Sequence record: OR513085.1
Strand: one strand, 5' to 3'
DNA: 64,000 nt
The notes under the pieces are model-generated. The model worked only from the letters and a program-made list of their open reading frames with translations, had not been told where the DNA came from and ran no database searches. The position numbers and the translations under genes are program-made. Below, piece after piece: positions 5,250-50,157 of this stretch. Each line of letters starts with the position of its first letter. Position 1 is the stretch's first letter.

Positions 5250-5702
5250 ATGAAGAAGTTTTTCTTAAAGAAGCAACGCGAGGAGCTTGAAGTCGATGAC
5301 TTTTCAGGCTACGATATGCCAGAAAATCAACAAATGCTAAACGAAGCAGGAAACATAGCAACTGACATTATTGACATTGGTCATGGCGATCGTAAAATTT
5401 TTGCAACCGTCAATGGCAAAACTGCAGGAGAGCTTTATCTTTTTCCTGAAAAGGGACAGCTACATATTGAACTTGTAAAAGTATTGCCTAATTTCAGAGG
5501 CCAAGGTATTGCAGGAATTCTACTTGAAAGGGCTGTCGAAGTTTCCAAAACTGAACGTAAAGACATAACGCTCATGGCTAGTCCTGTAGGCAAAGATGCC
5601 AGCTTAAGCAAGGACCAGTTAGTTAAACTTTATGGAAAGTACGGATTCAAAGTTTACGATGATTCCGATGAGCTTAATACTTACATGATTCGCAGACATT
5701 AA
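5250..5702 (+). CDS. GNAT-family acetyltransferase
   Basis: Acetyl-CoA motif A VKVLPNFRGQGIAGILLERAV; C-terminal LVKLYGKYGF. Confidence 0.85.
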   Translation: MKKFFLKKQREELEVDDFSGYDMPENQQMLNEAGNIATDIIDIGHGDRKIFATVNGKTAGELYLFPEKGQLHIELVKVLPNFRGQGIAGILLERAVEVSKTERKDITLMASPVGKDASLSKDQLVKLYGKYGFKVYDDSDELNTYMIRRH

Positions 5703-13934: not shown

Positions 13935-13976
13935 CATCTCTCAATTAGCTTGATTTTTTCATATTTGACATGAGTG

Positions 13977-14004
13977 GCCGGAACCTGACTAGTTCCGGCT
14001 TTTT
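13977..14004 (+). terminator. intrinsic terminator
   Basis: GCCGGAAC-N7-GTTCCGGC-TTTTT. Confidence 0.75.
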
Positions 14005-14651: not shown

Positions 14652-14694
14652 TTGCCCTTTTATTTTTACATGTCATAAAAAATGATTAAATTTA
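14652..14694 (+). promoter_or_regulatory. promoter, TTGC class
   Basis: TTGC...TTTTTACATGTC-N12-TAAATTTA. Confidence 0.75.
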
Positions 14695-14717
14695 CATATA
14701 ATTAAAAAATCAAAAAC

Positions 14718-15952: not shown

Positions 15953-16501
15953 ATGAAGCATTCAATAAAACTAGGATTCGCGGCGGACAAAGAAGCCGCG
16001 AATCCTTCAGTCATTCATAAAATGTGGTCGCTACTTAATGGCATATACCACGTAGAAACTGTAATGACTCAACAAAGCTCAGACCTTTCAAAAGTCATAA
16101 TTGACATAGCTAACCAGGCTATGGTTCCAGTTTTTAAGTTTTTACCTAATTGGCATCAACATCCAAAGAACGCTAAACAAATTTCAGATGCTACGATAGT
16201 TGATAATTCGGGCATTATGCTGTTGGTTTGGAATGGTAAGTCTGCAGGCATTCATGGCTTAGCCAACAGAATGGAGAAAGCCAACAAACCTTATGTTAAG
16301 TTACAAGATGTTGAAACTACTTCAAAAACTCAGCAACGCTTAGAAGGTGAACGTTTTGTGCTATACCAGCTAAACAAAGGTACTGCTTACGAATTTAAGC
16401 GAGTACTTGAAGTCTACAAATCTGAAAACTACATTGTTAACATGGATGGCGAGCAAGTTAACTACTATAAATGCTTCCTGGTAGACTTTTACAATCCTTA
16501 A
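15953..16501 (+). CDS. SLOG/YspA-like protein
   Basis: MLLVWNGKSAGIHGLANRMEKANKPY resembles the SLOG-family AFWDGxSxGT motif. Confidence 0.5.
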   Translation: MKHSIKLGFAADKEAANPSVIHKMWSLLNGIYHVETVMTQQSSDLSKVIIDIANQAMVPVFKFLPNWHQHPKNAKQISDATIVDNSGIMLLVWNGKSAGIHGLANRMEKANKPYVKLQDVETTSKTQQRLEGERFVLYQLNKGTAYEFKRVLEVYKSENYIVNMDGEQVNYYKCFLVDFYNP

Positions 16502-16537
16502 TAGACATGGATAGATATAAAAAGTACTCTAACCAAC

Positions 16538-16918
16538 ATGCAAACATTCTTACAAACAATCAATGAATCTGGTGTGGTTGACTACCGAGTCAAAAATGAT
16601 GGTGATACTGTTACGCTAACAATGTACATAGGACAAGTTAATGTAGGTCGATTCATTGCAAAAATCGAAGATGACAAGGCAGTCATAACGCACATGAGGG
16701 TCGGCGAATACTATAGGCATAACGGTTACGGTACCGTTTTATTAAAGAAGCTTATAAGAATTTTAAAGACCAATTTTGAATCAATTAATGAAATTTATGT
16801 TACTATTAAGAAAAGTCAATCAGTTAGCACTGATATGTTTAGAGCGTTACTATCTAAGGCCGGGTTTGAACCACGTACTTATGGTACTATAGAAGCTACA
16901 TTTAGCCTGAAAGTCTAA
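16538..16918 (+). CDS. GNAT-fold protein with CTS-like N-terminus
   Basis: MQTFLQTINES; motif A MRVGEYYRHNGYGTVLLKKL; late-like GATATAAA upstream. Confidence 0.7.
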   Translation: MQTFLQTINESGVVDYRVKNDGDTVTLTMYIGQVNVGRFIAKIEDDKAVITHMRVGEYYRHNGYGTVLLKKLIRILKTNFESINEIYVTIKKSQSVSTDMFRALLSKAGFEPRTYGTIEATFSLKV

Positions 16919-17250: not shown

Positions 17251-17466
17251 ATGAACAACAGCCAAAAACCTTCACAAACACCGACCGGTTGGGATATGAA
17301 CCAAGCAAGCTCGGCTATGTTTTTGAACGAAACAATTACTTGTGCTCATGAAATGTACGACAGTCAATTAGTTGCTACTGGAAAAGCCAAGTCGCTTAAT
17401 GAAGCTAGAAATCAGCCAAGAGCAATTTCATGTAATTGCAACAAATGCTCGCAAAGAGGTAAGTAG
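17251..17466 (+). CDS. small Cys-containing hypothetical protein
   Basis: 71 aa, CxCxxC tail. Confidence 0.5.
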   Translation: MNNSQKPSQTPTGWDMNQASSAMFLNETITCAHEMYDSQLVATGKAKSLNEARNQPRAISCNCNKCSQRGK

Positions 17467-17680: not shown

Positions 17681-18559
17681 TTAACTGAACATAATAATTG
17701 GCGATGAGCCGTCAGCATCAAGTTCTTCCTTAACTTCATCAATTAGTTCCTGGCCCCATTCTTTGTATTCGCTTGGGTCAATCTCTATACCTCCTGGCAT
17801 TTTGAATCCAAATACTCGTAGAATCCTAGTGATGTTTTTAAGGCACATACCTACTACGTATCTTGTAAATCTGTCGTCATCATAAAGGTCCTGTAAACAT
17901 AGACGTTCGTAAACTTCTAGCACAATGTTTGACGTTGGAACGTCAGAAAGGAAACGTAGCGTACGTGAGTTTCTGTTGTAGCTATGATAGTAGTGCTTGC
18001 TAAAAATTGAATTTATGTCACCTTGTGCTTGGATAGCAATCATAGAGTCACCGATGTTATCGTAGAATCTGTTTGAATAAACTTTGTTGATTGCATTCAT
18101 AGCGTAACCTCCAACTGAAGTATTTGACCAAGCTGCAGCTGTCATGAACATAGTTTCGTAACGGAATGCTAGGTTGTAGCTATACGGCATCATAGTAAAT
18201 GAAGTGTTTGGGTTAATTCCCTTCACTTGGTTAACTGACAATATTCTGTGAGGTAGTCTGATGTCCAAGTTAAAGTTGCCATTACGTCTAAGGTCGTTAG
18301 TGTCGATCATAAGCCACTTAATTTCCACAGCATCTTCGCAATGACGGAAATACCACTCTGCAGCCTGTTCAACTACGATTGGAATATTGTCGATAGGCAC
18401 TTGGAAAGGCAATTGTCCGTTTATCGTGATCATGTTTTGTATCTTTTGAAGGAACGCCAAATCCGCAGCATACTCGTCTTCCAATGACTCCTTGGAATAA
18501 ATTGACTTTATTAAGTCTTCACGGCTCCAACCGTTTTTAAATTGTCTTTCGTTTGACAT
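17681..18559 (-). CDS. neck protein gp13-like
   Basis: YVVGMCLKNITRILRVFGFKMPGGIEIDPSEYKEWGQELIDEVKEEL matches the T4 gp13 C-terminal LPGGV motif; start MSNERQ. Confidence 0.8.
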   Translation of the reverse strand: MSNERQFKNGWSREDLIKSIYSKESLEDEYAADLAFLQKIQNMITINGQLPFQVPIDNIPIVVEQAAEWYFRHCEDAVEIKWLMIDTNDLRRNGNFNLDIRLPHRILSVNQVKGINPNTSFTMMPYSYNLAFRYETMFMTAAAWSNTSVGGYAMNAINKVYSNRFYDNIGDSMIAIQAQGDINSIFSKHYYHSYNRNSRTLRFLSDVPTSNIVLEVYERLCLQDLYDDDRFTRYVVGMCLKNITRILRVFGFKMPGGIEIDPSEYKEWGQELIDEVKEELDADGSSPIIMFS

Positions 18560-25313: not shown

Positions 25314-26801
25314 ATGATTTTAGACGTTATCTACAATAATGTAGTAAACTCACAACTTGTGATAAGCTATGTTAATGACAAAGGCGGAGTAGACTTGAAA
25401 CATTACACAGTTTCAGATCAACCGAACCAATTTACAAAGTGGGTTTATAGCCACAATCCTACGGAAGTTATGCAAGGAGTAGTTTCGTTTGATGGAAAAC
25501 CAGTAAAACTTGACTTTGCTTCGAGATACAACAGGTTCGACTTTATGCAATTTGTTAACGGACTTCCTGAAGCAGAACGTGAAATGTTACTAGGCTTTAA
25601 GCCGATTGCTTGGTACTTTTTCGATATCGAAACGGAAATTCAGGATGAGTTCCCGGATGCAGAAAATGCAAAGACTCCAATTGTTTCTATATGCGTAACT
25701 GCAATGGATTCTAAACTTACTTCAATCGTTTTGACAACTGACCCATTACATAAAGAAACTGCAGAGGAAGCTACAAAAATCACAGTCGACTATATCCAAA
25801 CTAACTACGACAAAAACCAAGAAGTTGATGTTAGATTTGTTTATTGTGCATCTGAATATGAGTTGATTAAGATTTTCCTACAAATATACAAGAAAATCCC
25901 AGCATTATCAGGATGGAACATTGGTCCTGGTGAACGTGCGTATGACTGGCCTTACATTCTAAACAGAATGAAAAAGTTAGGATTGTCAATGACTGAAGCT
26001 TCAATTGACGGAACGTTAGACAGACATGGCTTACCAAACCACAAGCTTAATGTTGACTACATGGAACTTTTCAAAAAGTACGACTTCTCACTTAAACCTT
26101 ATGAATCTTACAGATTAGACTGGGTAGCTGGCAAGTCTTTGAAACTTCCAAAATTACCATATGACGGAACTTTAAAGCAATTGAGGGAAAACGACTTAGC
26201 AAGATTCTTGGCATATAATGCGATCGACACTATAATACTGGCGCTACTTCACAGAAAGCATAACTTAGTGTCGGTATTGAATGGGCTTTCATTAGTAACA
26301 TCACTGCCAATGCGAGATTGTATGGGGCCAGTGAACCAATCAGAAGCAGTATTGTTCAAATATTACTTTAAGCAAAAAGGTCCTAACGGAGAAATTGTAG
26401 TTTGCCCGCAACGTGAAAACCGACCTACAAAATACAAATACGACGGCGGTTATGTAAAAGACCCTGCAAGACAAATTGCAAAATACGTAATTTGTTTGGA
26501 CTTTTCATCACTATACCCATCATTGTATCGTACAATGAATCAAGGGCCTACGAATATATTGTTTGACGGTAGAACATTAACGCCATCTGAAATTGCACAG
26601 TATTCAAGCAATCCTGACTACATTATTTCTGCACAAGGCAGACTTTATGATAACCGAAAACCTTCGGCATACAAAGAAGTTCAGTCGGAATTGTACGTAA
26701 AGCGTAAAGAATATCAAGGCGACCAGTTCTTTTACTTGAACCAAATTCACTTCCCTGTTCAGCAAGAGGAAAAACGTAGAGGCTTAGTAGACTCAATTTA
26801 G
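25314..26801 (+). CDS. polB: family B DNA polymerase, N-terminal half (exonuclease plus motif A), gp43A-like
   Basis: FFDIETE, GWN..DWPY, YNAIDT, YDGGYVKDP, LDFSSLYPS; ends after the first fingers helix. Confidence 0.92.
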   Translation: MILDVIYNNVVNSQLVISYVNDKGGVDLKHYTVSDQPNQFTKWVYSHNPTEVMQGVVSFDGKPVKLDFASRYNRFDFMQFVNGLPEAEREMLLGFKPIAWYFFDIETEIQDEFPDAENAKTPIVSICVTAMDSKLTSIVLTTDPLHKETAEEATKITVDYIQTNYDKNQEVDVRFVYCASEYELIKIFLQIYKKIPALSGWNIGPGERAYDWPYILNRMKKLGLSMTEASIDGTLDRHGLPNHKLNVDYMELFKKYDFSLKPYESYRLDWVAGKSLKLPKLPYDGTLKQLRENDLARFLAYNAIDTIILALLHRKHNLVSVLNGLSLVTSLPMRDCMGPVNQSEAVLFKYYFKQKGPNGEIVVCPQRENRPTKYKYDGGYVKDPARQIAKYVICLDFSSLYPSLYRTMNQGPTNILFDGRTLTPSEIAQYSSNPDYIISAQGRLYDNRKPSAYKEVQSELYVKRKEYQGDQFFYLNQIHFPVQQEEKRRGLVDSI

Positions 26802-29005: not shown

Positions 29006-30172
29006 ATGAAAACAATAAAAGCTTACAAATACCGAATTTATCCTAACGCTACTCAAAAGGTAGTGCTTGATAAGTCGTTTGGCTGTGCACGTTTTTATTG
29101 GAATACTTTAGTTGCCGAATTAAATTCATATTCAAACGAGCATACTCCAGTATACAAAAGCGCTTCGCAAATACGTAGCGAATTTACTTGGATGCAAGAA
29201 GTGTCATGCTCAATGCTACAACAAAGGCGTATAGACTTTGATAGAGTACGTAACCAGTATTTTAACAAAAATCGCAAAACTAAATTGGGTAGAATTAAAT
29301 TCAAACGCAAAAATGAAAACCAATCATTTAGAATGAACAATCAAAATTTTGCGTTGCTTGACAATAAACTCAAAGTTACTAAATTAGGCTATATTAAAAT
29401 AAGCATTGACCGCAGGCCTCCTGAAAATGCTAAATACTTATCGGTTACTATTAGCAAAAATAATCTTAACGAGTACTATGCATCAGTATGCTTTGAATAT
29501 GAACATGAACCAAAAATAAAACAAACTACAAAAAATGTAGGCTGCGATTTAGGTATAGCATCATTGCTTACTTTATCGGACGGCTTACAATTTGCAAATC
29601 CTAAAATATTCAGAGAAAACCAATCTGAGTTAAGAAGATTGCAACAACATTTATCTAAAAAGCGTAAAGGAAGTTCTAGACATAACAAATGCAGAATTAA
29701 AGTCGCAAAGCTTTATAAAAAGATGACTAGGCAACGTGAATGGCTACTACATAATATTTCAAAATATGTAGTAACTAATTACAATGAAATTGCTTTAGAA
29801 GATTTGTCTATATCGTCTATGCGTAAACGTTATAGAATGAATAAGCAATTTAGACGTGCTTTGGAGGACGCTTCAATGACCAAATTAAAAAATTATATTT
29901 GGTACAAGCAGCAAGAATATGGTATACATGCACGTTTCATTCCACGTTATACAGCGTCATCTAAAGAATGCTATGAATGTGAGAACGTACAAAAAATTGC
30001 AATGCGAGAACGTGAATTTATTTGCACGTCATGCGGTACTGTACGTGACCGAGACTTAAACGCTGCTTTAGTAATACAAAGAAAAGCACTAGGTAGAATC
30101 AGCCCTAGTATACAAACATTGAGTGATATTAAGTCGTTACATCCACTTGTGGTTATAACGCAATTACAATGA
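29006..30172 (+). mobile_element. tnpB: IS200/IS605-family TnpB RNA-guided endonuclease, no TnpA in window
   Basis: HTH KAYKYRIYPN..Q..FGCARFYWN; RuvC-I GCDLG, RuvC-II ALEDL, CxxC..CxxC Zn ribbon, RuvC-III DRDLNAA. Confidence 0.93.
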
Positions 30173-30259: not shown

Positions 30260-31537
30260 ATGAAATTACAAAATCACATTATTAACGAAGAAGGCAATAT
30301 TATTTTTGATGGTAAGTGGGATATGTCTAAACTTGAAACGTATACGCCAGAGGAATTACAAATTATTAAGGATGATGCGTTAGTTTGGTCAATTCTAAAT
30401 GGTTCGATGTCAGTTTCACAAAAAACTATGATGAACTCAATTTATGGCGCAACAGCTAATGAGTGGTATTATTTCGCATCCATAGAAGCTGCTGATGACG
30501 TTACTGCTGAGGGTAGGTATTACATTAAGTTGTCGGAACAGATAATTATGGATTATATGAAAAATGTTTGGCACTTAGATAAAGAATTGCATAAACATTT
30601 AAAAGAACATCCAGAACTTAAAGCTTCTTTCAAAGACCCGGATTGGCGAGCTGAAGTTAAGCAAATAGATGTTAATTTGGATTACGTACTTTATATGGAC
30701 ACTGACTCGATGTACGTTACGTTTGAGGAATTATTTGAAACTATTGGCTATGACCCGCAACATGACGGTTCATATGCCAGGTTTATTATGGAAATGAATT
30801 CGTTCAGACTACGTGGATTGTTTAAGGAAAAAATTGGTGAACGTGTAGCCGAAAGACATGGTGAAAACTTTTTAGTTTTCGATTTGGAATCGGTATCTGA
30901 AACTACATGTTTCCTGGCAAAGAAAAAATATGTGATGTCGTACAAAATGGAAGACGAAAAAATTTATGACGACCCACTTAAACATATAAAAGGTAAAGGT
31001 GTTGAGCTAGTTCAGCAAAAATTAGCAGTGCCAATCAAAGACATGATTCGTTTCATGGTAGTTCAAATGTTCAAAGGTAAAATTACGAATGTTAACTACA
31101 AAACTTACATGAGGTATATGTTCCAGCAATTCTCGCAACTACCTTTCCAGCAAAGATGTACTTTAGGTTCAGCAAACACGTATGATAAATATGTGCTTAA
31201 CGATACTACAAGATGTGAATTTGCTTCTGGCGCAGGTGCAGATGTTAAAGGTATGGCATATTACAACTTTGATGTTAATGCAAAAGGACTTAAAACAAAA
31301 TATGAAGTTCTTAAAGGCGGTAAGTTAGTTTGGTATTATGCAAAACCTACGCAAGAGCATCCTGATAGATTTTCATACGCATTCCATGTTGACGAATATC
31401 CTGAGGAACTTGCTCCTGAAATGGACATCGAAACTCAATTTATGAAACTTGTAGCAGGACCTGTTGGTAGAATTGTAGCATGTGCCGGAATTGATGTAGG
31501 AAATCCTCTGGCATCTCAAATGATGATGGAATTATAA
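30260..31537 (+). CDS. polB: family B DNA polymerase, C-terminal half (motifs B and C), gp43B-like
   Basis: QKTMMNSIYG, VTAEGR, YMDTDS, KKKY, KGVE. Confidence 0.92.
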   Translation: MKLQNHIINEEGNIIFDGKWDMSKLETYTPEELQIIKDDALVWSILNGSMSVSQKTMMNSIYGATANEWYYFASIEAADDVTAEGRYYIKLSEQIIMDYMKNVWHLDKELHKHLKEHPELKASFKDPDWRAEVKQIDVNLDYVLYMDTDSMYVTFEELFETIGYDPQHDGSYARFIMEMNSFRLRGLFKEKIGERVAERHGENFLVFDLESVSETTCFLAKKKYVMSYKMEDEKIYDDPLKHIKGKGVELVQQKLAVPIKDMIRFMVVQMFKGKITNVNYKTYMRYMFQQFSQLPFQQRCTLGSANTYDKYVLNDTTRCEFASGAGADVKGMAYYNFDVNAKGLKTKYEVLKGGKLVWYYAKPTQEHPDRFSYAFHVDEYPEELAPEMDIETQFMKLVAGPVGRIVACAGIDVGNPLASQMMMEL

Positions 31538-38896: not shown

Positions 38897-39703
38897 ATGA
38901 AAAACTTTTTCAGCTTTATCAACGAAGCAAATTCATTCAATACAGACAACGGAAATCCTTTTAATGCAGGTGACATAGTTTATACAAAATCTGGTCGAAT
39001 TAAAGGGGTAATTGCATCAGATTACGTAAGCAAATCATCTAACGGACTTTCAGTTTACGTCGACTACCTAGAACCTGGGTCATACAAAGGCGGCAAGAGT
39101 ATGAAATTGCATTTAATTTCTGAACTTGTAGCATCTAGCGAAAAGAACATAGAAGGCAAAGAATTGGTGAAAAACTTCAAGCCTGGTGACTTAATAAAAA
39201 TTAAAGCAACAGGAAATGTTGGCGAAATTATCGAACATGACTTAGGCAAAAACAGAATTCAGTACAAAATTGTACAGGGCGAAAATATTACAAGACTAGA
39301 TAATTTCGTTTCCGCATTTGGAATTGAACTTGTAGATGCTAAGAAAATGGCAGATGCTAAATTAGCCGAGCTTAAGGCTAACAAAGACCTTAACAAATTC
39401 TTTAAAATTTCAATGAACTGGGAATGCGAATTTACTTTGGAAAAGGCTGACGACAAAAAGCCAGGTAGGTTCTGGGTTAGAATTCAAACATTCGGAAAAC
39501 GACTTTCTGAATATGAAGCTTACAAAACTGCAACTAACTTTGCGCCTCAGTCTAACAAAGAATATTCTGTTTCAGATTCGTATTACTTTGACACTAACGC
39601 ATCTAAACCAACATCTTGGAAAGAACTTAAAGAAAAGTTTAGTGAAAGCGAATCAAATTCAGAAGTTTCTGGTAGAATTTACCGTTACTTAGACCTCAAA
39701 TAA
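38897..39703 (+). CDS. putative internal head protein with CTS-like N-terminus and two SH3/KOW-like repeats
   Basis: MKNFFSFINEA; FNAGDIVYTK and FKPGDLIKIK modules. Confidence 0.6.
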   Translation: MKNFFSFINEANSFNTDNGNPFNAGDIVYTKSGRIKGVIASDYVSKSSNGLSVYVDYLEPGSYKGGKSMKLHLISELVASSEKNIEGKELVKNFKPGDLIKIKATGNVGEIIEHDLGKNRIQYKIVQGENITRLDNFVSAFGIELVDAKKMADAKLAELKANKDLNKFFKISMNWECEFTLEKADDKKPGRFWVRIQTFGKRLSEYEAYKTATNFAPQSNKEYSVSDSYYFDTNASKPTSWKELKEKFSESESNSEVSGRIYRYLDLK

Positions 39704-39835: not shown

Positions 39836-40594
39836 ATGCCTAGATTTAACACAAAATCAATATTTGCTTCGGCAACTAAATTTGCAAGAGGCATCCTTAG
39901 CTCAACACAAAAAATGTTTAATTCATCGGTTAAGGATGGCAATTATGACCTCAAAAAACGAATTGAGGAATCAGAATTTGTTAGAGATGATTCGTCCGCT
40001 AAGTCAGCTGCGCAAGATTGGCTACGTAAATACATGCAGAACAAAGACGTTCAGTTCAAGAAAAGACAAATGGAGGCAGGAAAGCTTTACTTTTTTCGCT
40101 ATATGAAGCCTAAACACATGGACACTTTGGAATACTGGGACCGAGGACCTCTAGTACTTTGCTTAGGCGGATATTGGTCGGCGGAAAATCAATACATTGA
40201 AGTTGGCTTAAACCTACACTTACTACCACCAAAAATTAGGCAGCAAGTACTAATTAAAGTATTTGACATGTTCAGACAACGTTATCGTGGCGAAATGTAC
40301 GCGCCTACGCAACGTCCGCTAGAACTTAATTGGCAGGCTATTGCTAGGCCTTTGCTACAATATGGAGCAGCTTTTGCATTTCGTAGCTACATACCACATC
40401 TACGTAGCCAAGCCATAGAGTTCAAATATGAAGACTGGGATAAAGCAATATTTGTTCCTAACGAATATTTAAACAAAACTACGGCACTGGAATTGAGAAA
40501 TATGTGGGCTGATTTTACTAGAAATCGTGCACTAAATCAATTATCATCTAGCAACTTAGAAAACTTATTGTCTGGTAATGGTCAAAGAAGGTAG
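39836..40594 (+). CDS. DNA end protector gp2-like
   Basis: GKLYFFRY..YWDRGPLV..GLNLHLLPP..FRSY. Confidence 0.85.
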   Translation: MPRFNTKSIFASATKFARGILSSTQKMFNSSVKDGNYDLKKRIEESEFVRDDSSAKSAAQDWLRKYMQNKDVQFKKRQMEAGKLYFFRYMKPKHMDTLEYWDRGPLVLCLGGYWSAENQYIEVGLNLHLLPPKIRQQVLIKVFDMFRQRYRGEMYAPTQRPLELNWQAIARPLLQYGAAFAFRSYIPHLRSQAIEFKYEDWDKAIFVPNEYLNKTTALELRNMWADFTRNRALNQLSSSNLENLLSGNGQRR

Positions 40595-40907: not shown

Positions 40908-42617
40908 ATGGCAGTAGAAAATTTTAACAACAACATAAACGTTACTAAGCAGAACGACTTGATGCGTAAACGTATCTTCAAGGAGATGCAGAACAACACA
41001 ACAAAGTCTGTTATTAACAAAATTTACAACTCTATTCAAGGTAACCAAACCACCATGGACAACATCGTCAATGAAGACGCCGTATCTCCTGGCAACTTGG
41101 CAGGCAAAGCTACACAAACAGTTTTCAATACTAAAGTAGCTTCTGTAGCCGATTGTATTGGTGCTGCCTCTGAAATGGAAATTGCAGATATCCTAGATCG
41201 TTTTGTCGATGAAATGATTGTTTACGGAACTGGCAACAACAGATTCTGTGAACCTGACTATTCGTCAATTGAGCAATTGGATATTACTGACAATGCTAAG
41301 CAGGAACTAAAAGACGAAATTGACAAAGCGTTTTCAAGAGTTTATAGATTGCTTAAGTACTCACGTCATAACATTCGTAGCGTTGAGGACGTTTCTGCAT
41401 TAGCAAAACGTTGGCTAACTATTGGTAAGCTAGCATACTTTATTGTCTATGACAACTTAGAAAAGCCTACAAAAATTCTAGACATTATCCCAATTGACTT
41501 ACGTAGATACACGCTAATTAAGCATGATATCCCAGTTAAAGTTAATAATGGGAAATATACATCGACTAAGACAGTTACTTATTGGACACTTCACGAAAAC
41601 ACTGGTAACGACCAGTACGGAAGAACAATGTATAACTCGGCAATGACTAACTTTACTTACTCGTTAGATAACGCACAGTTCCAAAAAGACATTTTTACTG
41701 ACATGGAAATTACTATGGCAGACTGGTCTAGAGTAGAATTTGAACTATCTAACGTACAGTCATATACTGCCATGCTACTTAGACCTTTCAACATTCTACG
41801 TATCATGGAACGTACAAAAATAATCTGGGCTGTAATGAACTCACGTTACAGAACAATGTATAAAATTCCTGTTGCTAACTTAGGTAAGCAAAGAGGTAAG
41901 CAGGTTATTTCAATGGTAATGAACGACTACAAGGAAAATGTAGAATTCAATTCGACTACCGGACAAATTTCAGTCAACGGACAGCCGGACTTACCTTTTA
42001 ACAAGGACATTTGGATGGGCCGAGGTAATGCAGGTGAACCTGAAATTATACCACTTGGCGGTAATGGTCCTGATATGTCAGACACTTCTACATTAACTCC
42101 GTTCTACCAAAAGTTACAAAAAGCGTCTAAAATGCCAATGTCTAGATTCGAGGAAAACAATGCAGTTTACTGGGATATTAACCCAATGGCAATTTCTCTT
42201 GAAGAACGTAGATTTGGTAAATACAACGAAAAAGTTCAGCAACAATTTATCGAACCTCTACGTAAATGTACGTACTACCAGCTACTTATAGCTAATCCAA
42301 AATATATTGGCGACACTAACATTTATGATGCTCTTAACATTCGTTGCAACAGATACAATGAACTTGAGCAAATGATGGAACTTGAAACTTTGAACAAGAA
42401 AATCGAACTTATCGGAGATGTTAAAGACAAAATGAAAATTTACGATAAGGATGGCAACGAAGTTCCACTTATATCTACTAGATTGCTACTTGACAAATAC
42501 TTACCGCTTACTAAGGCAGAAAAAGAACTTAACGAGAAGTACATCAAGGAAGAGCAGGAGAATATTAAGAAGGCTATACAAAATCAAACATATTCTGGTG
42601 AAAACCAAGGTTATTAG
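40908..42617 (+). CDS. portal protein gp20
   Basis: RWLTIGKL, LRPFNILRIMERTKIIWAVMNS..YKIPVANL, DIWMGR, LQKASKMPMSRF, EERRFGKY. Confidence 0.92.
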   Translation: MAVENFNNNINVTKQNDLMRKRIFKEMQNNTTKSVINKIYNSIQGNQTTMDNIVNEDAVSPGNLAGKATQTVFNTKVASVADCIGAASEMEIADILDRFVDEMIVYGTGNNRFCEPDYSSIEQLDITDNAKQELKDEIDKAFSRVYRLLKYSRHNIRSVEDVSALAKRWLTIGKLAYFIVYDNLEKPTKILDIIPIDLRRYTLIKHDIPVKVNNGKYTSTKTVTYWTLHENTGNDQYGRTMYNSAMTNFTYSLDNAQFQKDIFTDMEITMADWSRVEFELSNVQSYTAMLLRPFNILRIMERTKIIWAVMNSRYRTMYKIPVANLGKQRGKQVISMVMNDYKENVEFNSTTGQISVNGQPDLPFNKDIWMGRGNAGEPEIIPLGGNGPDMSDTSTLTPFYQKLQKASKMPMSRFEENNAVYWDINPMAISLEERRFGKYNEKVQQQFIEPLRKCTYYQLLIANPKYIGDTNIYDALNIRCNRYNELEQMMELETLNKKIELIGDVKDKMKIYDKDGNEVPLISTRLLLDKYLPLTKAEKELNEKYIKEEQENIKKAIQNQTYSGENQGY

Positions 42618-42686: not shown

Positions 42687-42935
42687 ATGAAAACATTTAC
42701 ATACTTTATTAATGAAGCTAAACGAAACGAAAATTTACGTAATGACATTTATGCTAAATTGACTGCAGGCTCATCTAAAGTACCGCTGACAGTTATACAA
42801 AGATTAACTGCAATGATACAAAATAAAAAAGTATCGTTGACTGCAATTTTATCATTTGCTGAAAGTTTCATAAAAGACAAAGACTTACTTAATGAAATTG
42901 TTAGCATGCTAAATTCAAATTTCGTTAATGAATAA
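42687..42935 (+). CDS. small putative internal head protein with CTS-like N-terminus
   Basis: MKTFTYFINEA; lies between portal and protease. Confidence 0.65.
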   Translation: MKTFTYFINEAKRNENLRNDIYAKLTAGSSKVPLTVIQRLTAMIQNKKVSLTAILSFAESFIKDKDLLNEIVSMLNSNFVNE

Positions 42936-42978: not shown

Positions 42979-45900
42979 ATGAACAACACACAGAACTTAG
43001 GTTTTCTTGTAGAAAATCATGTTTCGCACAACGTCTTCCAAAGAATTGACGAATCTGTTGCGTTACCAGATGGAGTTCTGATGCTTATGCGAGGTACGTT
43101 TATTCCTATGGACGTTCCTGGCGAGAATGGCAGATGGTACACTTACGCTGACTATGCACCGCAGGTAGAAATGTTACTACCTAAAATTGCTAGGAAAGAA
43201 TGTTTTGGAGAAATTGAACATCCTCAAAGAGTTCACGTTCCTTACGACTTAGCGTCTCACAGAGTTGAGGAAGTTTACTACGACAAAGCATCAAATTCTT
43301 GGATTGGTACTATCGCAATTTTAGATACTGACAAAGGTAGAGCAGTTTACGATATCGCAAAAACTGGAGCTCCTATATACGTTTCGCATAGAGCGTTAGG
43401 TTCAGTTGACCAAAAGACTGGCAAAGGAATTCTACTTAAATTGCTTACTTGGGACGTAACTTCCAATCCATCGTTTAAGGCTGCAGAATTTAGCAGAGCC
43501 GAACTTATCAATGAATCCGCTTACGTTTACTTGCCGCTAGAAGACGAAATGCTTAACGAATGCTATGCTGAGCTTGGCTTAACGTCAGAAGACTTCATCA
43601 ACGAATCTACTGTTACTCTAACTCAAAGCGAATTGTTAGCTATGCTTAATGAAGCGTCTAACAATGCTAACGCTATAGCTACCGAACGTTACGCAAAGCT
43701 TTTAGCTAACGCAATTAATGTAAATGCCAATTTTGTTAATGAACATATTGCAATTCAGCCATCACAAGTTATCGACGTCGTTAAGAAAATTAAAGAACGT
43801 CCTTGGATGACTGCCCAGGAAATGCTTGACCCGGAATTCAAATTTAACGACGAATATATGCATCCGCTAGATTTAGTTGCTGCAATGCAAGCTCTGGCTT
43901 CAGAAGGCATGCTATACGACGAAGATGCTCCTGGTTTTGATGAAAACGAACCTCAAATAGCATCAGTTATTGCAGTACCTCAATTAGAAGAAGTAATTGC
44001 TAATTGGCAAATGGAGCAAGATGCTTTAGCTGCGGATGTTATTGCTGCCGAAGAAGCCAAAGCTGCTAAGTTTTCAAATGAATCTGTAGACTTCGTAAAT
44101 AATTTTGCATCTGAATATGCTTTTGTAGGTCCTTATGAAGCTACAAAACAAGCAGTAGCTGCATTAACTGGCAAAGCTATTGGTGATCTTTCTGAATCTG
44201 TTGAAGCTAGAATTTCCGACATAATGGTTAACGCTAAACCTGGTAATGCTGAGGAAATTATAAATGCTTTAGTTGACGCTGAACTATATGTTAGTGAAGC
44301 TTTAGAAGCAGCTAGCAATCCTAATAAGAACAAAGAAATGCTACAAATTTTAGTTAACTTTACAAAATATGTTGAACTAAAATTACATGTATTCCACCAC
44401 AATACTAAAAGCTACGCACAACATAAAGCATTCGATACAGCATACAAAAGCTTCCAAAAGCTAACTGATAGCATAATTGAACAAGCTATGGGATATAGCG
44501 GCGAACGCTATGATACTATAGACCTTTCAGTTTCTATGCCAATTGTATATGCTGACGATTCTGGAGCTGATGTTATAGAATCACTTTATTCGTTGTCAAA
44601 AGTTATTAAGCTAATTTCTGAGGATTTGATTGCCGGAGGACTTTCTACGTTATCTGACGATGTTTCAGGAATTGGTGCGCAACTTTCGTACTTAATGACA
44701 TTAAACGAATCTCAGCTAGATGAATTTGCTAATGAAGGTGTTTCTAGCTGGCTTAAAGATAAGTGGTCTAGGCTTAAACGTTGGGCCAACTCAAACATAG
44801 ATGCTACTGTAACTATTGATGGAGTAGACTATATTATTGATGACATTCAGGAAGACGACAAAGTAATTTGCAGAGATTCCGATGGCAAAGCCAAAGAATT
44901 TACCTTTGACGAGGTTTATAAATACTTAAACGAAAACAACATATTACAACCACAAACAATGGCAAATACACACATTAACGAGGGCGTTGACGGAGCAAAA
45001 GCAAACGTTCTAGCTATTCTTTCCGGAGCAAAATTTGTAAGCTCGGTAGATAATGCAACAGATTATGACTATTCAATTGACGACGACGGACTTACTGCAG
45101 CTTCTGATGAAGTGGCATTAGATATCCTAGCCGTTCTTAAAAATAACGCAGTTACTGCTTCTGTAGATGGAGCTAAAGTAGCTATAACTTTCGGAATTGT
45201 TCCTGCAGTAGTTACTGACCAAATTAACGAATCTTTAGAAGACTTCTGTAACAAAATGCTTAGCTATGCTAACGAATCAGGTAATGCAGGAAACATTATT
45301 AACGCAGCAATGGCTATTCAAAATGCTAATGGCGTTATAAACATTAACGAATCTTACGTTACGTATTGCGAACAAATTGTAGAATATGCTAACGAATCAG
45401 GAGTAGCTTCTGACATTGCTAACGCTGGATCGCTATTACAAAATGCTTTAGAAGCAAAATTTGCTAATGAGGCCGAAGAAACTGCAGCAATCGTATCTGA
45501 TGCTACAATTGCCGGAGATGTTGCTGTAGATGGAGGTAATGAAAGATATGCAGTAGGATGCGTATTCTCAGTAGATTCTCAAAACTTCACAGTTGCTGAA
45601 TTTGACGGAACTAACGTAGTAACTACTACTGGTGAAACTTTCACTGTAGCTGAACTAAAGAAAGACGATGACGCACCAATTCCTGGAACTGATGATGCAT
45701 TAGAACCTGGTGCTCCTGTAGAAGGCGACAATACTGTTGATATGACTGTAACTCCTGTAGGAACTATCGGTTCAATCAACGAATCTTATAGCAAAACTAA
45801 CAAGCCAAAAATTGGTGATAAAGTTACTTTCATCATGGATAACCCAGACGGTCCTGGATTTGGTAAAGTTAAAAATGGTGAAAAAGTTACTGCTACTGTA

Positions 45901-46602
45901 GCTGATTTTGGTGACTGGGAAGGTGACGGTTATTCTCTTGACGTAGTACTTACTGGAGTTTCTGAGGAATACAACGTTTACACTACTGAACTTATCAATG
46001 AAGCTGCTGAGGACTTAACTGACTTACCTTCTGGAACTGCAGAGAACATTGACCATAAAGTTATCGAGGATGGCAATGCTACTGACATTCCTAGCAACCT
46101 CGACAAACCACTAGAAAACAAATTAGCTGAGGACTTCCTTGCTAGAGCTGATAAAGGCGTAACATTTGAACAATGGATTGTTGACCAAGCTTCTGCTAAC
46201 GAATTAGTTACTCCTCAGTTAGTAATGACGGTTAAAACAATTATTTCTGACATGGAAGTTAAGCAAATGATTAACGAATCTGCAGTACTAACCGCAGCAT
46301 TTATTAACGAATCTGCAGAAGCTACTGAACAATCAGCTCACTTAAAGCTTATTGGTGACCACATCGGACAATCTCACAAATACATGTTTGAACACTTGAA
46401 CGAATCTGCAAAAGGAGTTCTAGTTGCTCAAGCTGAATTGTATAACTTGTCCAGCCAAAATATCCACGACTTCCTTGATACAAGAAACTGGGCACAAATC
46501 GCTAATACTACAATTAACGAATCAGTAGCTCAAATTTCTGCAAATATTCAACAAAATGACTGGAAATCTGCACTTAAAGCATCTTTCAGAGCAGGTAGAT
46601 AG
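42979..46602 (+). CDS. prohead protease gp21 fused to long scaffold/core polyprotein
   Basis: N-terminal gp21 motifs NGRWY, FGEIEHP, VSHRALGSV, WDVTSNPSF; acidic remainder with recurrent (I/L/A)NE(S/A/G). Confidence 0.9.
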   Translation: MNNTQNLGFLVENHVSHNVFQRIDESVALPDGVLMLMRGTFIPMDVPGENGRWYTYADYAPQVEMLLPKIARKECFGEIEHPQRVHVPYDLASHRVEEVYYDKASNSWIGTIAILDTDKGRAVYDIAKTGAPIYVSHRALGSVDQKTGKGILLKLLTWDVTSNPSFKAAEFSRAELINESAYVYLPLEDEMLNECYAELGLTSEDFINESTVTLTQSELLAMLNEASNNANAIATERYAKLLANAINVNANFVNEHIAIQPSQVIDVVKKIKERPWMTAQEMLDPEFKFNDEYMHPLDLVAAMQALASEGMLYDEDAPGFDENEPQIASVIAVPQLEEVIANWQMEQDALAADVIAAEEAKAAKFSNESVDFVNNFASEYAFVGPYEATKQAVAALTGKAIGDLSESVEARISDIMVNAKPGNAEEIINALVDAELYVSEALEAASNPNKNKEMLQILVNFTKYVELKLHVFHHNTKSYAQHKAFDTAYKSFQKLTDSIIEQAMGYSGERYDTIDLSVSMPIVYADDSGADVIESLYSLSKVIKLISEDLIAGGLSTLSDDVSGIGAQLSYLMTLNESQLDEFANEGVSSWLKDKWSRLKRWANSNIDATVTIDGVDYIIDDIQEDDKVICRDSDGKAKEFTFDEVYKYLNENNILQPQTMANTHINEGVDGAKANVLAILSGAKFVSSVDNATDYDYSIDDDGLTAASDEVALDILAVLKNNAVTASVDGAKVAITFGIVPAVVTDQINESLEDFCNKMLSYANESGNAGNIINAAMAIQNANGVININESYVTYCEQIVEYANESGVASDIANAGSLLQNALEAKFANEAEETAAIVSDATIAGDVAVDGGNERYAVGCVFSVDSQNFTVAEFDGTNVVTTTGETFTVAELKKDDDAPIPGTDDALEPGAPVEGDNTVDMTVTPVGTIGSINESYSKTNKPKIGDKVTFIMDNPDGPGFGKVKNGEKVTATVADFGDWEGDGYSLDVVLTGVSEEYNVYTTELINEAAEDLTDLPSGTAENIDHKVIEDGNATDIPSNLDKPLENKLAEDFLARADKGVTFEQWIVDQASANELVTPQLVMTVKTIISDMEVKQMINESAVLTAAFINESAEATEQSAHLKLIGDHIGQSHKYMFEHLNESAKGVLVAQAELYNLSSQNIHDFLDTRNWAQIANTTINESVAQISANIQQNDWKSALKASFRAGR

Positions 46603-46817: not shown

Positions 46818-48539
46818 ATGCAAACATTATTTCCAAACGCCAACCAAGTTGGCAACATGGTAGACAGATGGTCTGAATTTATTAACGAAGCAGCTCCTAA
46901 AGGTGGTAGTACTCTATCTGATGGTAAGAGAGCAATGATCGCTCAGGTTGCAGAATTCCACGCTCATGGCAAGGATATCGCAACTGGAGGATTCTTGAAC
47001 GAATCTATCATCGGTACAAATATTATGTCAAACGGTGCTAACATGAACGGAATGGGTTCTATTACTCTTCCTACTAACGTTAAAGCTGGATTTACCCAAT
47101 TCAACCAACAAACTCCTGGTTCTGGTGATGTTCCTGTGACTGTGCTTTCAATGGCAATGTCAGTAGCTGCGACTACTATCGGTTTTGATTTGTTACCAAC
47201 TATTCCAATTTATCAGCCTGCAGTAATGCTACAGTACGTAGATTACCTTTACGGTGGTGGTAAACTTGATTCGGCAGATAACCCTCCTTTGATCGTTATG
47301 GCTAGAATTGAGGAACTTAGAGGACACCTTGATCTTAGACAAGGTTCTAAAGTTGCTATCCACTCTGTTGCAGGTGATGCTACTTCTGGATGGACATTTG
47401 AGTTCGTTGGATTTACAAGATTAGAAGGATATGCAACTTTAAAGGTTGACACTTTCGCTAACAAAGTAACTCCTGCATTAGGTTCTCTTGCTTTAGTTGA
47501 ATTTACTATTGACGGTGGTGCTCCTGTAACAGTTGCTCCTGCTGGAAATCCTAAATTGGAATTAGCTAGAGCGGTTGAAAACCACTTCTCAATGTTCACA
47601 GCTTACGGAAACCTTGATGGTGAAGGAGTTGATAGAGCTGAAGCTGAAAAAGGTACAAGATCAGTTATCGAAATGAGAACTTACTCTAAAGTAGTAAGAA
47701 CTAAAGAACATGCTGTAGAAGGTATCGTTTCAAGACAACAAGCTAGAGATATCAAAGCTATGGGTCTTGATGCATTCCCTCAATTGAAAGTTGCAATGCA
47801 GAATGACATCTCTCAGTCATTAAACAAGGAAATCCTTATGAGAATGAGACAGATGGGTGTTTCTACACACTTAATGTTACAGAAATCTCAAGGAGTTAAC
47901 TTGAACACTTACATTGACTTACCAGCTAACACTTCTAAGCCAATTGTACAGTTCAAAACTCAGCCTCTTATCGACAAGAACGGAGTTAACCAAACTGCTA
48001 ACTTCTTACCAGCTCCTAACTCTGAAACTAACTCAGCTGCTGAAAACCTTTGGACTAGACAAAGAAGAGTAACTTCTACCATCATCACTGGTGCTGCTCT
48101 AGTAGGACAAGCTTCTTTCCACGGTTCTGCTGACGCTGTAGTTGTTAACTCTCAGTTAATGGCAGCTATTAAGGAATCTGTTGGTTACCAGCCAGCTACT
48201 ATTGAGAACAAAATCTCTCAGTCTACAAAGGCTCTTTATTATGCAGGTACTATTTCTGACGTTGCAGTTTACTGTGACCCTAACATGAAATGGAACGATA
48301 CTACTGCTATCTTGGCTAGAACAGGTAAAACTGATGACGGTCTTGATATTAACCAATTAGCAGAAGGGTTAGTTTTTCTTCCGTATGTCTTGAGTTCGGA
48401 AGTTGAAATTATCACTGAAGGAACTATGGGTCCTAAAGCGTTAATCGAAACTGTTTATGCTATCGGAGAAATTGGTATCAGACCAGAACTTGCTTACTTA
48501 ACTATCGTATTCGATAACGGATTTGGTAGATGGGCATAA
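46818..48539 (+). CDS. major capsid protein gp23
   Basis: 573 aa after the protease; gp23-like VLSMAMSVAATTIGFDLLPTIP..YVDYLY, AEAE, RQQARDIKA; N-terminal INEA/LNES sites; strongly biased codons. Confidence 0.92.
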   Translation: MQTLFPNANQVGNMVDRWSEFINEAAPKGGSTLSDGKRAMIAQVAEFHAHGKDIATGGFLNESIIGTNIMSNGANMNGMGSITLPTNVKAGFTQFNQQTPGSGDVPVTVLSMAMSVAATTIGFDLLPTIPIYQPAVMLQYVDYLYGGGKLDSADNPPLIVMARIEELRGHLDLRQGSKVAIHSVAGDATSGWTFEFVGFTRLEGYATLKVDTFANKVTPALGSLALVEFTIDGGAPVTVAPAGNPKLELARAVENHFSMFTAYGNLDGEGVDRAEAEKGTRSVIEMRTYSKVVRTKEHAVEGIVSRQQARDIKAMGLDAFPQLKVAMQNDISQSLNKEILMRMRQMGVSTHLMLQKSQGVNLNTYIDLPANTSKPIVQFKTQPLIDKNGVNQTANFLPAPNSETNSAAENLWTRQRRVTSTIITGAALVGQASFHGSADAVVVNSQLMAAIKESVGYQPATIENKISQSTKALYYAGTISDVAVYCDPNMKWNDTTAILARTGKTDDGLDINQLAEGLVFLPYVLSSEVEIITEGTMGPKALIETVYAIGEIGIRPELAYLTIVFDNGFGRWA

Positions 48540-48667: not shown

Positions 48668-50098
48668 ATGATTAAACGTAAAAGACAAACATATAATGAC
48701 GTTATAGCCGATTGCAAAAAAGCTCATGGTAATTATTATGACTATGTAGATACGTCTGCTACTTGGTATAAGAAAACTGACAAACTTAGAATTATATGTC
48801 CTGTTCATGGCGAATTTGAACAATCTGGCAAAAACCATAGTAAAGGCCAAGGCTGCACAAAATGCAAAAAGAACATACAATCGTATGACCAAATTATAAC
48901 TAAAGTCCTGGAAATTCATGCGTCCAGAGGCTATATTTACGAAGACACTTCGGCAGAATTTACAGTTTCAACATCGTCATTCCTTAAAGCTAATTGTCCT
49001 AAGCATGGCGAATTTGAAGTCAGGGCGCATGCACATAGTGTAGGTGTTTTAGGATGTCAAGGATGCTATACGGATGATTTAGTTGATCGTCAAAGATATA
49101 GTAAAGATGAAATGCATAGCATTTGTAAAGTTATTTTAGCTAAACGTAAATGTACAATTTTAGACATAACTTTTTATGTCGATAAAGCAAATTCAAATTT
49201 TATAATAAATTGCCCTAAGCATGGCAATTTTGAAAAGAATGCTTATCAAATTTTATTAAAACAAGGTTGCCCTAATTGCGTAGGCTATAATTCCTCAAAG
49301 GCTGAAACATTTTTGAGAGATCATTTAGTTGGCCAAGGTATTGCAGATGCTGTAGGTCGTAAGCGTTTTAGACATCATGAAACTAATAAACTTTACGAAA
49401 TAGACGTGCAATCGCCAAGCTTAAAAATTGGAATAGAATTTAACGGAATACATTGGCATAGAGGCGAAGTATTCAAGCATAAACATATGCTAAAAACTAC
49501 AAGCCTAGACTATATGAACTGGCAGTTAATTCATATTTTTGAGGATGAATATCATGCAAAATTTAATGCAGTAATGTCAATGATTAATCATAAGCACGGA
49601 GTTACTAAACAAAAAATTCATGCCAGGAAAACTAAGACTGCTTTAATTGACGAAGACACTTACGTACAATTCTGCAACGAAAACTGCATACAAATTTTTG
49701 ACAAGCTGGCATTTAATTACGTAGGGCTATATTTAGCAGAAACATTAGTTGGCGTAATTGCGTATAACGTAGATACTAAAGCTAACGTAGACATCATAAA
49801 TATTGCGATGTTAAACAATCATAATATAATTGGCGGAGTCGGCAAATTAGTAGCTTATGTAGAACGTTCGGAACGTCCTGCATCAATAACCGCTACGCTA
49901 AACAGGCAATTCTCAACTAAGCATAACGTTTTTGCAAAACTAGGCTTTGATTTTGTTGAATATACAGAACAGAATTTTATGTACAGTATACATAGCAGTC
50001 CTAGGATTTTGCCAGAACATACGTCTATTGAACATCAAATAGATTCTAATAAAGTCTGGGATGTCGGTAACATTATTATGAAAAAAGTGTTCAAATAA
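48668..50098 (+). CDS. free-standing Hef-like/DUF559-type homing endonuclease
   Basis: three CPxHGxF..GCxxC Zn ribbons; EIDV..KIGIEFNGIHWH..LIHIFEDE nuclease core. Confidence 0.8.
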   Translation: MIKRKRQTYNDVIADCKKAHGNYYDYVDTSATWYKKTDKLRIICPVHGEFEQSGKNHSKGQGCTKCKKNIQSYDQIITKVLEIHASRGYIYEDTSAEFTVSTSSFLKANCPKHGEFEVRAHAHSVGVLGCQGCYTDDLVDRQRYSKDEMHSICKVILAKRKCTILDITFYVDKANSNFIINCPKHGNFEKNAYQILLKQGCPNCVGYNSSKAETFLRDHLVGQGIADAVGRKRFRHHETNKLYEIDVQSPSLKIGIEFNGIHWHRGEVFKHKHMLKTTSLDYMNWQLIHIFEDEYHAKFNAVMSMINHKHGVTKQKIHARKTKTALIDEDTYVQFCNENCIQIFDKLAFNYVGLYLAETLVGVIAYNVDTKANVDIINIAMLNNHNIIGGVGKLVAYVERSERPASITATLNRQFSTKHNVFAKLGFDFVEYTEQNFMYSIHSSPRILPEHTSIEHQIDSNKVWDVGNIIMKKVFK

Positions 50099-50130
50099 TT
50101 TTCATATGTCGTAAAAAATGATTAAATTTA
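50099..50130 (+). promoter_or_regulatory. early/middle-type promoter
   Basis: TTTTCATATGTC-N12-TAAATTTA. Confidence 0.8.
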
Positions 50131-50157
50131 CATATAATTAAAAATAACGATAACAGC

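Follow-up and report, generated by a model that had tools for sequence, protein, structure and literature searches.

Gene MA9V2_179 and its product

The stretch analysed here, called the window, comprises 64,000 nucleotides corresponding to positions 124001-188000 of Chryseobacterium phage MA9V-2 (OR513085.1), a myovirus and jumbo phage of C. indologenes MA9 with a genome of 218,539 bp. Positions 16538-16918 of its plus strand hold the gene MA9V2_179. The product, a "hypothetical protein" in the record, is a 126-residue GNAT acetyltransferase precursor consisting of a leader and a GNAT core, as judged from the open reading frame (ORF), the annotation, Pfam PF00583 and an AlphaFold2 model. The initial annotation had placed the ORF at exactly these coordinates, and the start of the protein, MQTFLQTINESGVV, is confirmed. 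The leader, MQTFLQTINE (16538-16567, plus strand), resembles a capsid-targeting propeptide, and a cut after E10 (nucleotides 16567/16568) is predicted from its sharing with other genes, its site motif, the low confidence of the model in this region and the orthologues. The predicted mature GNAT, S11-V126, occupies 16568-16915 (plus strand; model and computed properties). Within it, the family alignment identifies an acetyl-coenzyme A (acetyl-CoA) pyrophosphate-binding loop, R60-H-N-G-Y-G65, at 16715-16732 (plus strand).

Between MA9V2_179 and the MA9V-1 copy there are 13 synonymous and 4 non-synonymous changes, and the leader is identical; this comparison shows purifying selection on the gene. 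In a word-index protein search, MA9V-1 was the sole match.

A minimal GNAT fold

The GNAT core proposed in the initial annotation is real. Pfam Acetyltransf_1 (PF00583) matches MA9V2_179 at 29.1 bits (E=1.3e-6), where the gathering cut-off is 20.7. PHROG families labelled "acetyltransferase" match the protein as well. The AlphaFold2 model, built on an 8-sequence family alignment, is a predicted and not a solved structure, with a mean predicted local distance difference test score (pLDDT) of 81.6 and a predicted template-modelling score (pTM) of 0.76. Foldseek aligned it with probability 1.0 to hundreds of GNATs in PDB, AFDB and BFVD, at template-modelling (TM) scores of 0.62-0.76. The top PDB matches were Ta0374, the HP0935 protein acetyltransferase, Naa60, RimI and NatC (query TM 0.62-0.70); the top AFDB cluster match reached TM 0.76, and the top viral match was a 116-residue GNAT of the related Tenacibaculum phage PTm1. 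The stretch R60-H-N-G63-Y-G65 fits the R/Q-x-x-G-x-G/A acetyl-CoA loop, and E57, R60, N62 and G65 are invariant across the 8 family members. E57 is the candidate Glu for general base/acid catalysis.

The topology of the model is β1-β2-β3-β4-α3-β5-α4-β6-β7. It has no α1-α2 arm, a usual GNAT element that contributes to the acceptor site, and the canonical α4 Tyr position is occupied by Leu (Leu, Phe or Val in the family). Given the missing arm and the absent Tyr, catalysis is plausible but not assured; many active GNATs are without the canonical α4 Tyr. The best curated-family and structural resemblance is to N-alpha acetyltransferases of the RimI/Naa type. However, the best NCBIfam match, RimI (TIGR01575), reaches 27.8 bits, far under the equivalog cut-off of 86.4, and unlike those enzymes MA9V2_179 has no α1-α2 arm and no conserved canonical Tyr. 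It is not an orthologue of them. Weak PanZ/PanM profile matches lie below cut-off. A PDB sequence search with the family profile matched nothing, and no ART domain of the T4 Alt type was found in the protein, whose profile searches match GNAT families only. On its sequence and predicted structure, MA9V2_179 is a compact, minimal GNAT.

A leader shared by unrelated proteins of MA9V-2

When the first ten residues of MA9V2_179 were scored against every ORF start of the genome, at least five unrelated genes besides MA9V2_179 were found to start with M-[KRQ]-[TN]-F-x-x-[FIT]-[IV]-N-E-[SA]. These are MA9V2_054 (MRTFTQIINES, 154 residues, genome 40608-41072, minus strand); MA9V2_208 (MKTFTYFINE/A, 82 residues, window 42687-42935, plus strand), which lies between portal and protease in the position of T4 gp67/gp68; MA9V2_205 (MKNFFSFINE/A, 268 residues, window 38897-39703, plus strand), between the head-completion (gp4-like) and DNA-end-protector (gp2-like) genes; MA9V2_269 (MKNFFQFINES, 199 residues), in the last 3.5 kb of the genome; and MA9V2_265 (MKTFFTFVNES, 99 residues), with V at position 8. 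Position 7 is Thr in the GNAT leader and F or I in the other MA9V-2 leaders. Shorter variants begin MA9V2_023 (MKNFFINES), MA9V2_101 (MKQFFVNES) and MA9V2_237 (MSNYINEA).

This likeness is far from what chance would give. Five other N-termini score at least 20 against residues 2-10 of the GNAT leader (BLOSUM62), with 0.063 expected from an empirical null of 61,667 internal 9-mers (P~8e-9). The motif [IL]NE[SA] begins at exactly residue 8 in four proteins of the first 215 kb, compared with 0.021 expected (P~9e-9), and MA9V2_269, from the final 3.5 kb, adds a fifth. When all 218.5 kb of the genome are translated in six frames, the core pattern [KRQ][TN][FY]xx[FITLVM]IxE appears 5 times, always immediately behind the Met1 of an annotated gene (179, 054, 205, 208 and 269).

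BLASTP comparisons between the tested leader carriers gave no similarity outside the leader. Upstream of the leader genes the DNA cannot be aligned, and synonymous differences separate the leader codons, which indicates that the likeness is selected at the peptide level; a duplicated DNA segment as the source of the leader was rejected because the upstream regions do not align. In the model of MA9V2_179, residues 1-11 have pLDDT <50, the fold begins at residue 13-14 (first strand from residue 14), and structural alignments begin at residues 9-23. The leader is thus predicted to be disordered and outside the GNAT fold.

Several other N-termini of the phage are worth recording. MA9V2_141 (68 residues, genome 112548-112754) starts MKTFSQFITD, with Asp at position 10. 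MA9V2_054 has an extra C-terminal NINE/SNV site, so that both of its termini may be processed, as in T4 Alt; it shows a weak ParB-like nuclease match. This gene precedes the large terminase gene, but its assignment as a small terminase was rejected, since its homologues in PTm1 and phage PAU stand directly after the portal gene. An Atlas look-up of MA9V2_205 returned sub-threshold leads only. A second, annotated GNAT of the phage, MA9V2_164 (window 5250-5702), has an internal in-frame ATG at 5316, from which it would read MPENQQMLNE/AGN, a ten-residue N-terminus ending in an LNE/A site. Read in this way, MA9V2_164 might be a second tagged acetyltransferase, if the internal start is used.

A putative maturation site and a T4-type head module

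The end of the leader coincides with a motif that is enriched throughout the proteome. [IL]-N-E-[SA] occurs 37 times in the 254 ORFs, compared with 5.8±2.4 in a shuffled proteome; 12 occurrences fall in the protease/scaffold protein, 7 in MA9V2_236 and 2 in the N-terminal region of the major capsid protein (MCP), where FINE/A occupies residues 22-25 and LNE/S contains Glu62. Because the motif is enriched and is placed in the protease/scaffold, the MCP propeptide and the leaders, [I/L]-N-E/[S/A] would appear to be the prohead-protease maturation site of MA9V-2. Cleavage after E10 would then give a GNAT of 116 residues, 13.1 kDa and an isoelectric point (pI) of 9.5. Its N-terminus would be SGVV, the one named in the initial annotation, which follows from the predicted cut.

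The window encodes a distant T4-type head module. A T4 gp20-type portal (MA9V2_207, 40908-42617, plus strand; PF07230, E=4e-56) is followed by MA9V2_209 (42979-46602, plus strand), a gp21-type (S77) prohead protease with a long scaffold-like region that holds the 12 [IL]NE[SA] sites, and by a gp23-type MCP (MA9V2_210, 46818-48539, plus strand), whose propeptide has FINE/A (predicted cut after nucleotide 46889) and LNE/S (predicted cut after residue 62, nucleotide 47003). The protease domain of MA9V2_209 scores 27.3 bits against a PF03420 threshold of 27.0 and matches PHROG 207 with E=5.5e-26; its H81 and S136 align with H85 and S140, the catalytic residues of T4 gp21. The protein has 1207 residues, with the protease at the N-terminus; about 950 further residues contain DUF5856 and the 12 predicted sites. 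The MA9V-1 homologue of the gene is longer (4,044 bp vs 3,624 bp). This architecture suggests a protease-scaffold polyprotein. The order 204 (gp4-like)-205-206 (gp2-like)-207 (portal)-208-209 (protease/scaffold)-210 (MCP) mirrors the T4 order 4-2...20-67-68-21-22-23. Proteases of the gp21 family cleave after Glu, and in T4 65 residues are removed from gp23 and the scaffold is chopped (PMC5694885; PMC9026906).

Outside the window, the 1044-residue orphan MA9V2_236 (genome 187770-190904) carries seven [IL]NE[SA] sites, and its neighbour MA9V2_237 (genome 191138-192439) starts MSNYINE/A. These two probably also belong to the processed head or ejection proteins.

Comparison with the T4 capsid-targeting sequence

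The initial annotation had likened the leader to the targeting sequence MKTYQEFIAE of the T4 internal proteins (IPs) IPII and IPIII, and this sequence agrees with the T4 record, in which IPII and IPIII start MKTYQEFIAE/A and IPI starts MKTFKEF. MA9V2_208 and IPII/IPIII have M-K-T-(F/Y)-x-x-F-I-x-E-A in common. The GNAT leader and the T4 capsid-targeting sequence (CTS) are of the same length and have M1, T3, F/Y4, I8 and E10 in common. According to reviews that cover the work of Mullaney and Black, packaging needs no more than the first 10 residues of IPIII; targeting depends chiefly on residues 4 and 7 and processing on residues 8 and 10; Asp10 blocks processing and leaves targeting; and CTS fusions carry green fluorescent protein, a nuclease or beta-galactosidase into T4 heads and on into cells (PMC3012670; PMC5694885; PMC9026906). 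The known fate of T4 CTS proteins is ejection (PMC9026906). T4 mutagenesis, as reviewed in PMC9026906, ties processing to I or L at position 8 and Glu at position 10 with a small residue next, and the GNAT leader reads I8-N9-E10 followed by S11. At the targeting positions, where T4 has hydrophobic or aromatic residues, it has the aromatic F4 and, at position 7, Thr.

In both phages a 10-residue propeptide (a predicted one in MA9V-2) of the form M-K/Q-T-aromatic-x-x-hydrophobic-I-x-E/[AS], ending in an I/L-x-E site, is found on unrelated small basic proteins, beside a gp20/gp21/gp23-type head module and with scattered cargo genes; the predicted mature GNAT is small and basic (13.1 kDa, pI 9.5) like the T4 IPs. 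The differences are also clear. The MA9V-2 site is specifically [I/L]-N-E/[S/A], its proposed cargo is an enzyme of the GNAT fold, and the phage infects Bacteroidota and is a remote relative of T4, with a portal about 22% identical to those of T4-like phages.

In concept the GNAT is like T4 Alt, as an enzyme proposed to travel inside the head, to be trimmed there by the prohead protease and to enter the host together with the DNA in order to modify it. Alt is much larger, at about 70 kDa compared with 13 kDa for the GNAT; its propeptide has 7 residues, and it is also processed at the C-terminus. The two differ in fold and chemistry (ART and NAD+ vs GNAT and acetyl-CoA), so the likeness is functional and not one of homology. 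Two further systems resemble the GNAT by description. Rac of phiKMV-like phages is a phage GNAT that acetylates a host protein, the RNA polymerase alpha subunit, but it is expressed after infection and is not known as a packaged protein. GNAT domains are also predicted in polyvalent proteins that are coinjected with DNA, but these are giant, multidomain and without a T4-type CTS. Jumbo-phage GNATs, Rac and the GNAT domains of injected polyvalent proteins are discussed in PMC7824862. In the literature, no paper was found that joins a capsid-targeting sequence to Bacteroidota phages or to an acetyltransferase.

A related observation concerns T4 gp2, the DNA end protector in the head (L012 16062-16886, minus strand), which starts MAIFQIINEST, strikingly like MRTFTQIINES of MA9V2_054. 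The gp2 homologue of MA9V-2 (window 39836-40594) has no gp2-type INE start.

Orthologues and related phages

An exhaustive HMMER search found small metagenomic homologues of MA9V2_179. Scans of viral contigs with the GNAT protein, the portal and the family alignment gave no confirmed locus, nor did a scan of metagenome contigs with the family alignment. Two homologues, P0002 (128 residues, MKLLSKFINEN...) and P0004 (123 residues, MQTLSSFINES...), are 34-37% identical to MA9V2_179, keep the leader with Phe at position 7 and lie in syntenic phage contigs. One of these contexts reads DEDDh exonuclease...257-residue baseplate-hub-like gene...GNAT; in the other (contig L011) the GNAT directly follows a 183-residue counterpart of MA9V2_178. 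Three more, P0006, P0008 and P0010, are syntenic in the order baseplate gene, GNAT, two small genes and reverse-strand gp13 neck gene. These three begin in a similar, hydrophobic way (MQYLTDIIK, MLEFTSFTK), but the I-N-E site is missing from them, which means that the tag is not universal in this GNAT family. P0007 has no leader. The long "homologues" P0003, P0005 and P0009 were rejected as low-complexity artefacts, since they matched many unrelated Pfam families and contained no significant stretch.

By portal, the nearest cultured relative is phage PAU (30% identity), whose host is in fact a Sphingobacterium despite the Sphingomonas name (PMC3738902). Within 41 kb around the PAU head genes, 15 ORFs start MKT[IL]xx[LM][YF]E (for example MKTISKLYE), including the annotated scaffolding protein (gp152) and two "internal capsid proteins" (gp142 and gp154). 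Several of these leaders continue KLNE/[AS], and the PAU MCP propeptide has KLNE/S. PAU thus resembles MA9V-2 in having a common N-terminal leader that ends in Glu on head-region proteins, but the leader sequence is different. A scan of ten PAU cargos revealed no GNAT. PAU gp114 (L008 2093-2899, 268 residues, MKTISQLYE/G) matches the phosphoribosyltransferase family PF00156 near threshold (25.2 bits vs 26.3); by its sequence it may be another packaged enzyme, and enzymes may be tagged elsewhere in the group. No recurrent leader was seen in the head regions of the Tenacibaculum phages pT24 and PTm1; the trait is thus not general across the wider group.

Genomic context and transcription signals

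MA9V2_179 follows MA9V2_178 (15953-16501, plus strand), whose 183-residue L011 counterpart has a weak YAcAr/SLOG-like match. Downstream, a gp13-type neck protein (17681-18559, minus strand; annotation and synteny) is the landmark of the GNAT in all orthologous contigs. The small conserved ORF MA9V2_181 (window 17251-17466), 3' of the GNAT, contains F-[IL]-N-E-T-[IV]-x-C-x-H in all relatives, for example at L013 2708-2887 and L014 4224-4379; this is more likely to be a Cys/His motif than a cleavage site. Further downstream, the annotation of the family-B DNA polymerase is split (window 25314-26801 and 30260-31537), with three genes between the two parts, one of them a TnpB-family gene (29006-30172). 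The polymerase gene may be interrupted by a mobile element.

The motif called late-like in the initial annotation is present upstream of the GNAT as GATATAAAAA (16514-16523, plus strand), 7/8 to TATAAATA, and it is conserved in MA9V-1, but it is statistically uninformative. The sequence GATATAAA at 16514-16521 stands upstream of one of the 254 ORFs. Matches to TATAAATA with at most one mismatch occur in 68 upstream regions compared with about 56 in shuffled upstream regions, and perfect matches are not enriched (6 vs 3.8 in shuffles) in these AT-rich regions. A late promoter at GATATAAA was therefore rejected, as the sequence is not recurrent and its 7/8 match to TATAAATA is at chance level. 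A sigma-70 consensus scan gave no more sites than shuffles. Two anecdotal cases were noted: the L011 orthologue has a perfect TATAAATA about 24-31 nucleotides before its ATG, and TATAAATA also precedes the MCP gene.

A conserved promoter-like element is found before MA9V2_175 (14656-14712, plus strand). This element of about 45 nucleotides (TTCATATGTCG...TTTACATATAATTAAAAA) has 8 copies in the genome, located 20-33 nucleotides before the ATG of eight genes: the copy at window 14656-14712, one at about 50095-50149 and six elsewhere. One copy precedes a DEAD-box helicase gene. On the plus strand, no terminator-like site was found between the 14656-14712 element and the GNAT; the only one nearby lies upstream, at 13976-14000. 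From this arrangement, the tightly packed run 175-182 that contains the GNAT probably starts at the putative promoter element about 1.8 kb upstream.

Proposed role and alternative explanations

The tag described above is the part of the original proposal, a tagged and packaged GNAT, that stands: a CTS-like leader occurs on at least six unrelated genes, ends in the putative protease site, lies outside the fold, recurs in orthologues, has a counterpart in PAU and accompanies a T4-type head module. Packaging itself is deduced. Because the leader is shared by at least five other proteins, appears removable and is built like the T4 CTS, the GNAT probably ends up inside the phage head, from where it may enter the host along with the DNA. 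That MA9V2_179 is a targeted and processed head protein is considered likely. The full account, in which the GNAT is made as a precursor with a 10-residue capsid-targeting propeptide and is enclosed, processed and ejected to acetylate the host, is favoured with slightly more reserve. As a step of its own, the role of an injected, catalytically active, host-modifying effector is put forward tentatively, by analogy with T4.

The sequence of events would be as follows. By analogy with the T4 IPs, the leader would bind the scaffolding core of the assembling prohead, so that the GNAT becomes enclosed. The gp21-type protease would cut after Glu10, a site taken from motif statistics, and the basic 13-kDa enzyme beginning SGVV would stay in the head with the DNA. 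At infection the GNAT would exit with the DNA and, ahead of any phage gene expression, use host acetyl-CoA to acetylate some macromolecule of the host; the likeliest target would be an amino group on a protein.

Several points weigh against this account. Among the leaders, that of the GNAT diverges most (Q2, L5 and T7), and its Thr7 sits at a T4 targeting position; the orthologues P0006 and P0008 are without the Glu10 site; the gene is located away from the head module, and the match of its "late" motif is no better than chance. The cleavage motif is deduced from enrichment alone, ejection of head-internal proteins is known for T4 and would be extended to the MA9V-2 lineage by analogy, and predicted catalysis is not assured with the α4 Tyr replaced by Leu and the arm missing. 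The MA9V-1 and MA9V-2 papers contain no mass spectrometry, and the MA9V-1 sodium dodecyl sulfate polyacrylamide gel covers 20-260 kDa, above the predicted 13 kDa; the MA9V-2 paper shows no such gel, and a search for public sequencing runs listed none.

A rival explanation is an ordinary cytoplasmic phage GNAT, comparable to phiKMV Rac or the GNATs of other jumbo phages, that is expressed during infection and left unpackaged, with an N-terminus that merely resembles the leader or is a decaying remnant of it. Thr7 and Gln2 do not fit the consensus of the remaining leaders, the Glu10 site is missing from P0006, P0008 and P0010 and the whole leader from P0007, and the gene stands, away from the head module, in a unit headed by a promoter-like element that also precedes the helicase gene. 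In addition, many jumbo phages encode unpackaged GNATs (PMC7824862), and the best viral structural neighbour is the 116-residue GNAT of PTm1, a phage whose head region is without a recurrent leader. However, an exact I-N-E-S at residues 8-11 together with F4 is very improbable by chance (P~1e-8), and the leader persists at 35% identity although the rest of the protein has diverged. According to the model it is also disordered and dispensable for the fold, and a position outside the head cluster is shared by the T4 internal-protein genes, which are likewise scattered. An unpackaged enzyme is regarded as unlikely.

Alternatively, the GNAT could be packaged and act inside the prohead or capsid, where it might N-alpha-acetylate the Ser/Ala neo-N-termini left by the protease or, being basic, serve as an internal protein associated with the DNA. 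Its nearest relatives by curated family and by structure are the N-alpha acetyltransferases RimI, Naa60 and NatC, which act on Ser/Ala N-termini; a Ser or Ala would be exposed by each of the predicted cuts, and the mature protein has a pI of 9.5. On the other hand, GNAT resemblance predicts substrates poorly, the RimI score of 27.8 is far below 86.4, no precedent for in-capsid acetylation was found in the literature, and T4 CTS proteins are known to be ejected (PMC9026906). A role inside the particle seems quite unlikely, and its specific form, an N-alpha-acetyltransferase capping the Ser/Ala ends exposed at [I/L]-N-E/[S/A], is the least probable of all the proposals considered. Nearly as improbable is a non-catalytic GNAT-fold protein, packaged or not, that works as a CoA- or acetyl-CoA-binding regulator of the PanZ/PanM type or as a pure binder. 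The weak PanZ/PanM matches, the absence of the canonical α4 Tyr in all family members and the acceptor-site arm missing from the model would agree with it, but the PanZ matches are below cut-off, E57 is invariant, the acetyl-CoA loop is intact, and the lack of the Tyr is common among active GNATs. Packaging with delivery to the host is preferred, and the CTS-like reading is the best available explanation of the MA9V2_179 N-terminus, well supported in silico.

Implications

CTS-directed packaging of the T4 type is known; what would be new in MA9V-2 is the chemistry of the cargo, the cleavage code and the host phylum. If the proposal is true, the T4 capsid-targeting mechanism, with a cleavable tag that is read by the scaffold core and removed by a gp21-type protease, would be ancient, and it would be conserved in very distant Bacteroidota jumbo phages of the T4 superfamily with a lineage-specific cleavage code, [I/L]-N-E/[S/A]. 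Acetylation would join the chemistries delivered ready-made at infection, of which ADP-ribosylation by T4 Alt is the one known so far. If acetylation instead took place in the capsid, proteolytic maturation would be coupled to acetylation inside the virus particle. The sequence rule would also predict the packaged or ejected proteome, with at least 6-10 candidates in MA9V-2 and at least 15 in PAU, mostly annotated without a function, and the 10-residue tag would be usable for loading foreign proteins into the heads of Bacteroidota phages. It is possible, though we say so with caution, that MA9V2_179 is the first case of a phage injecting an acetyltransferase as a stand-alone effector and that its tag is a portable packaging signal conserved from T4 to the jumbo phages of Bacteroidota.

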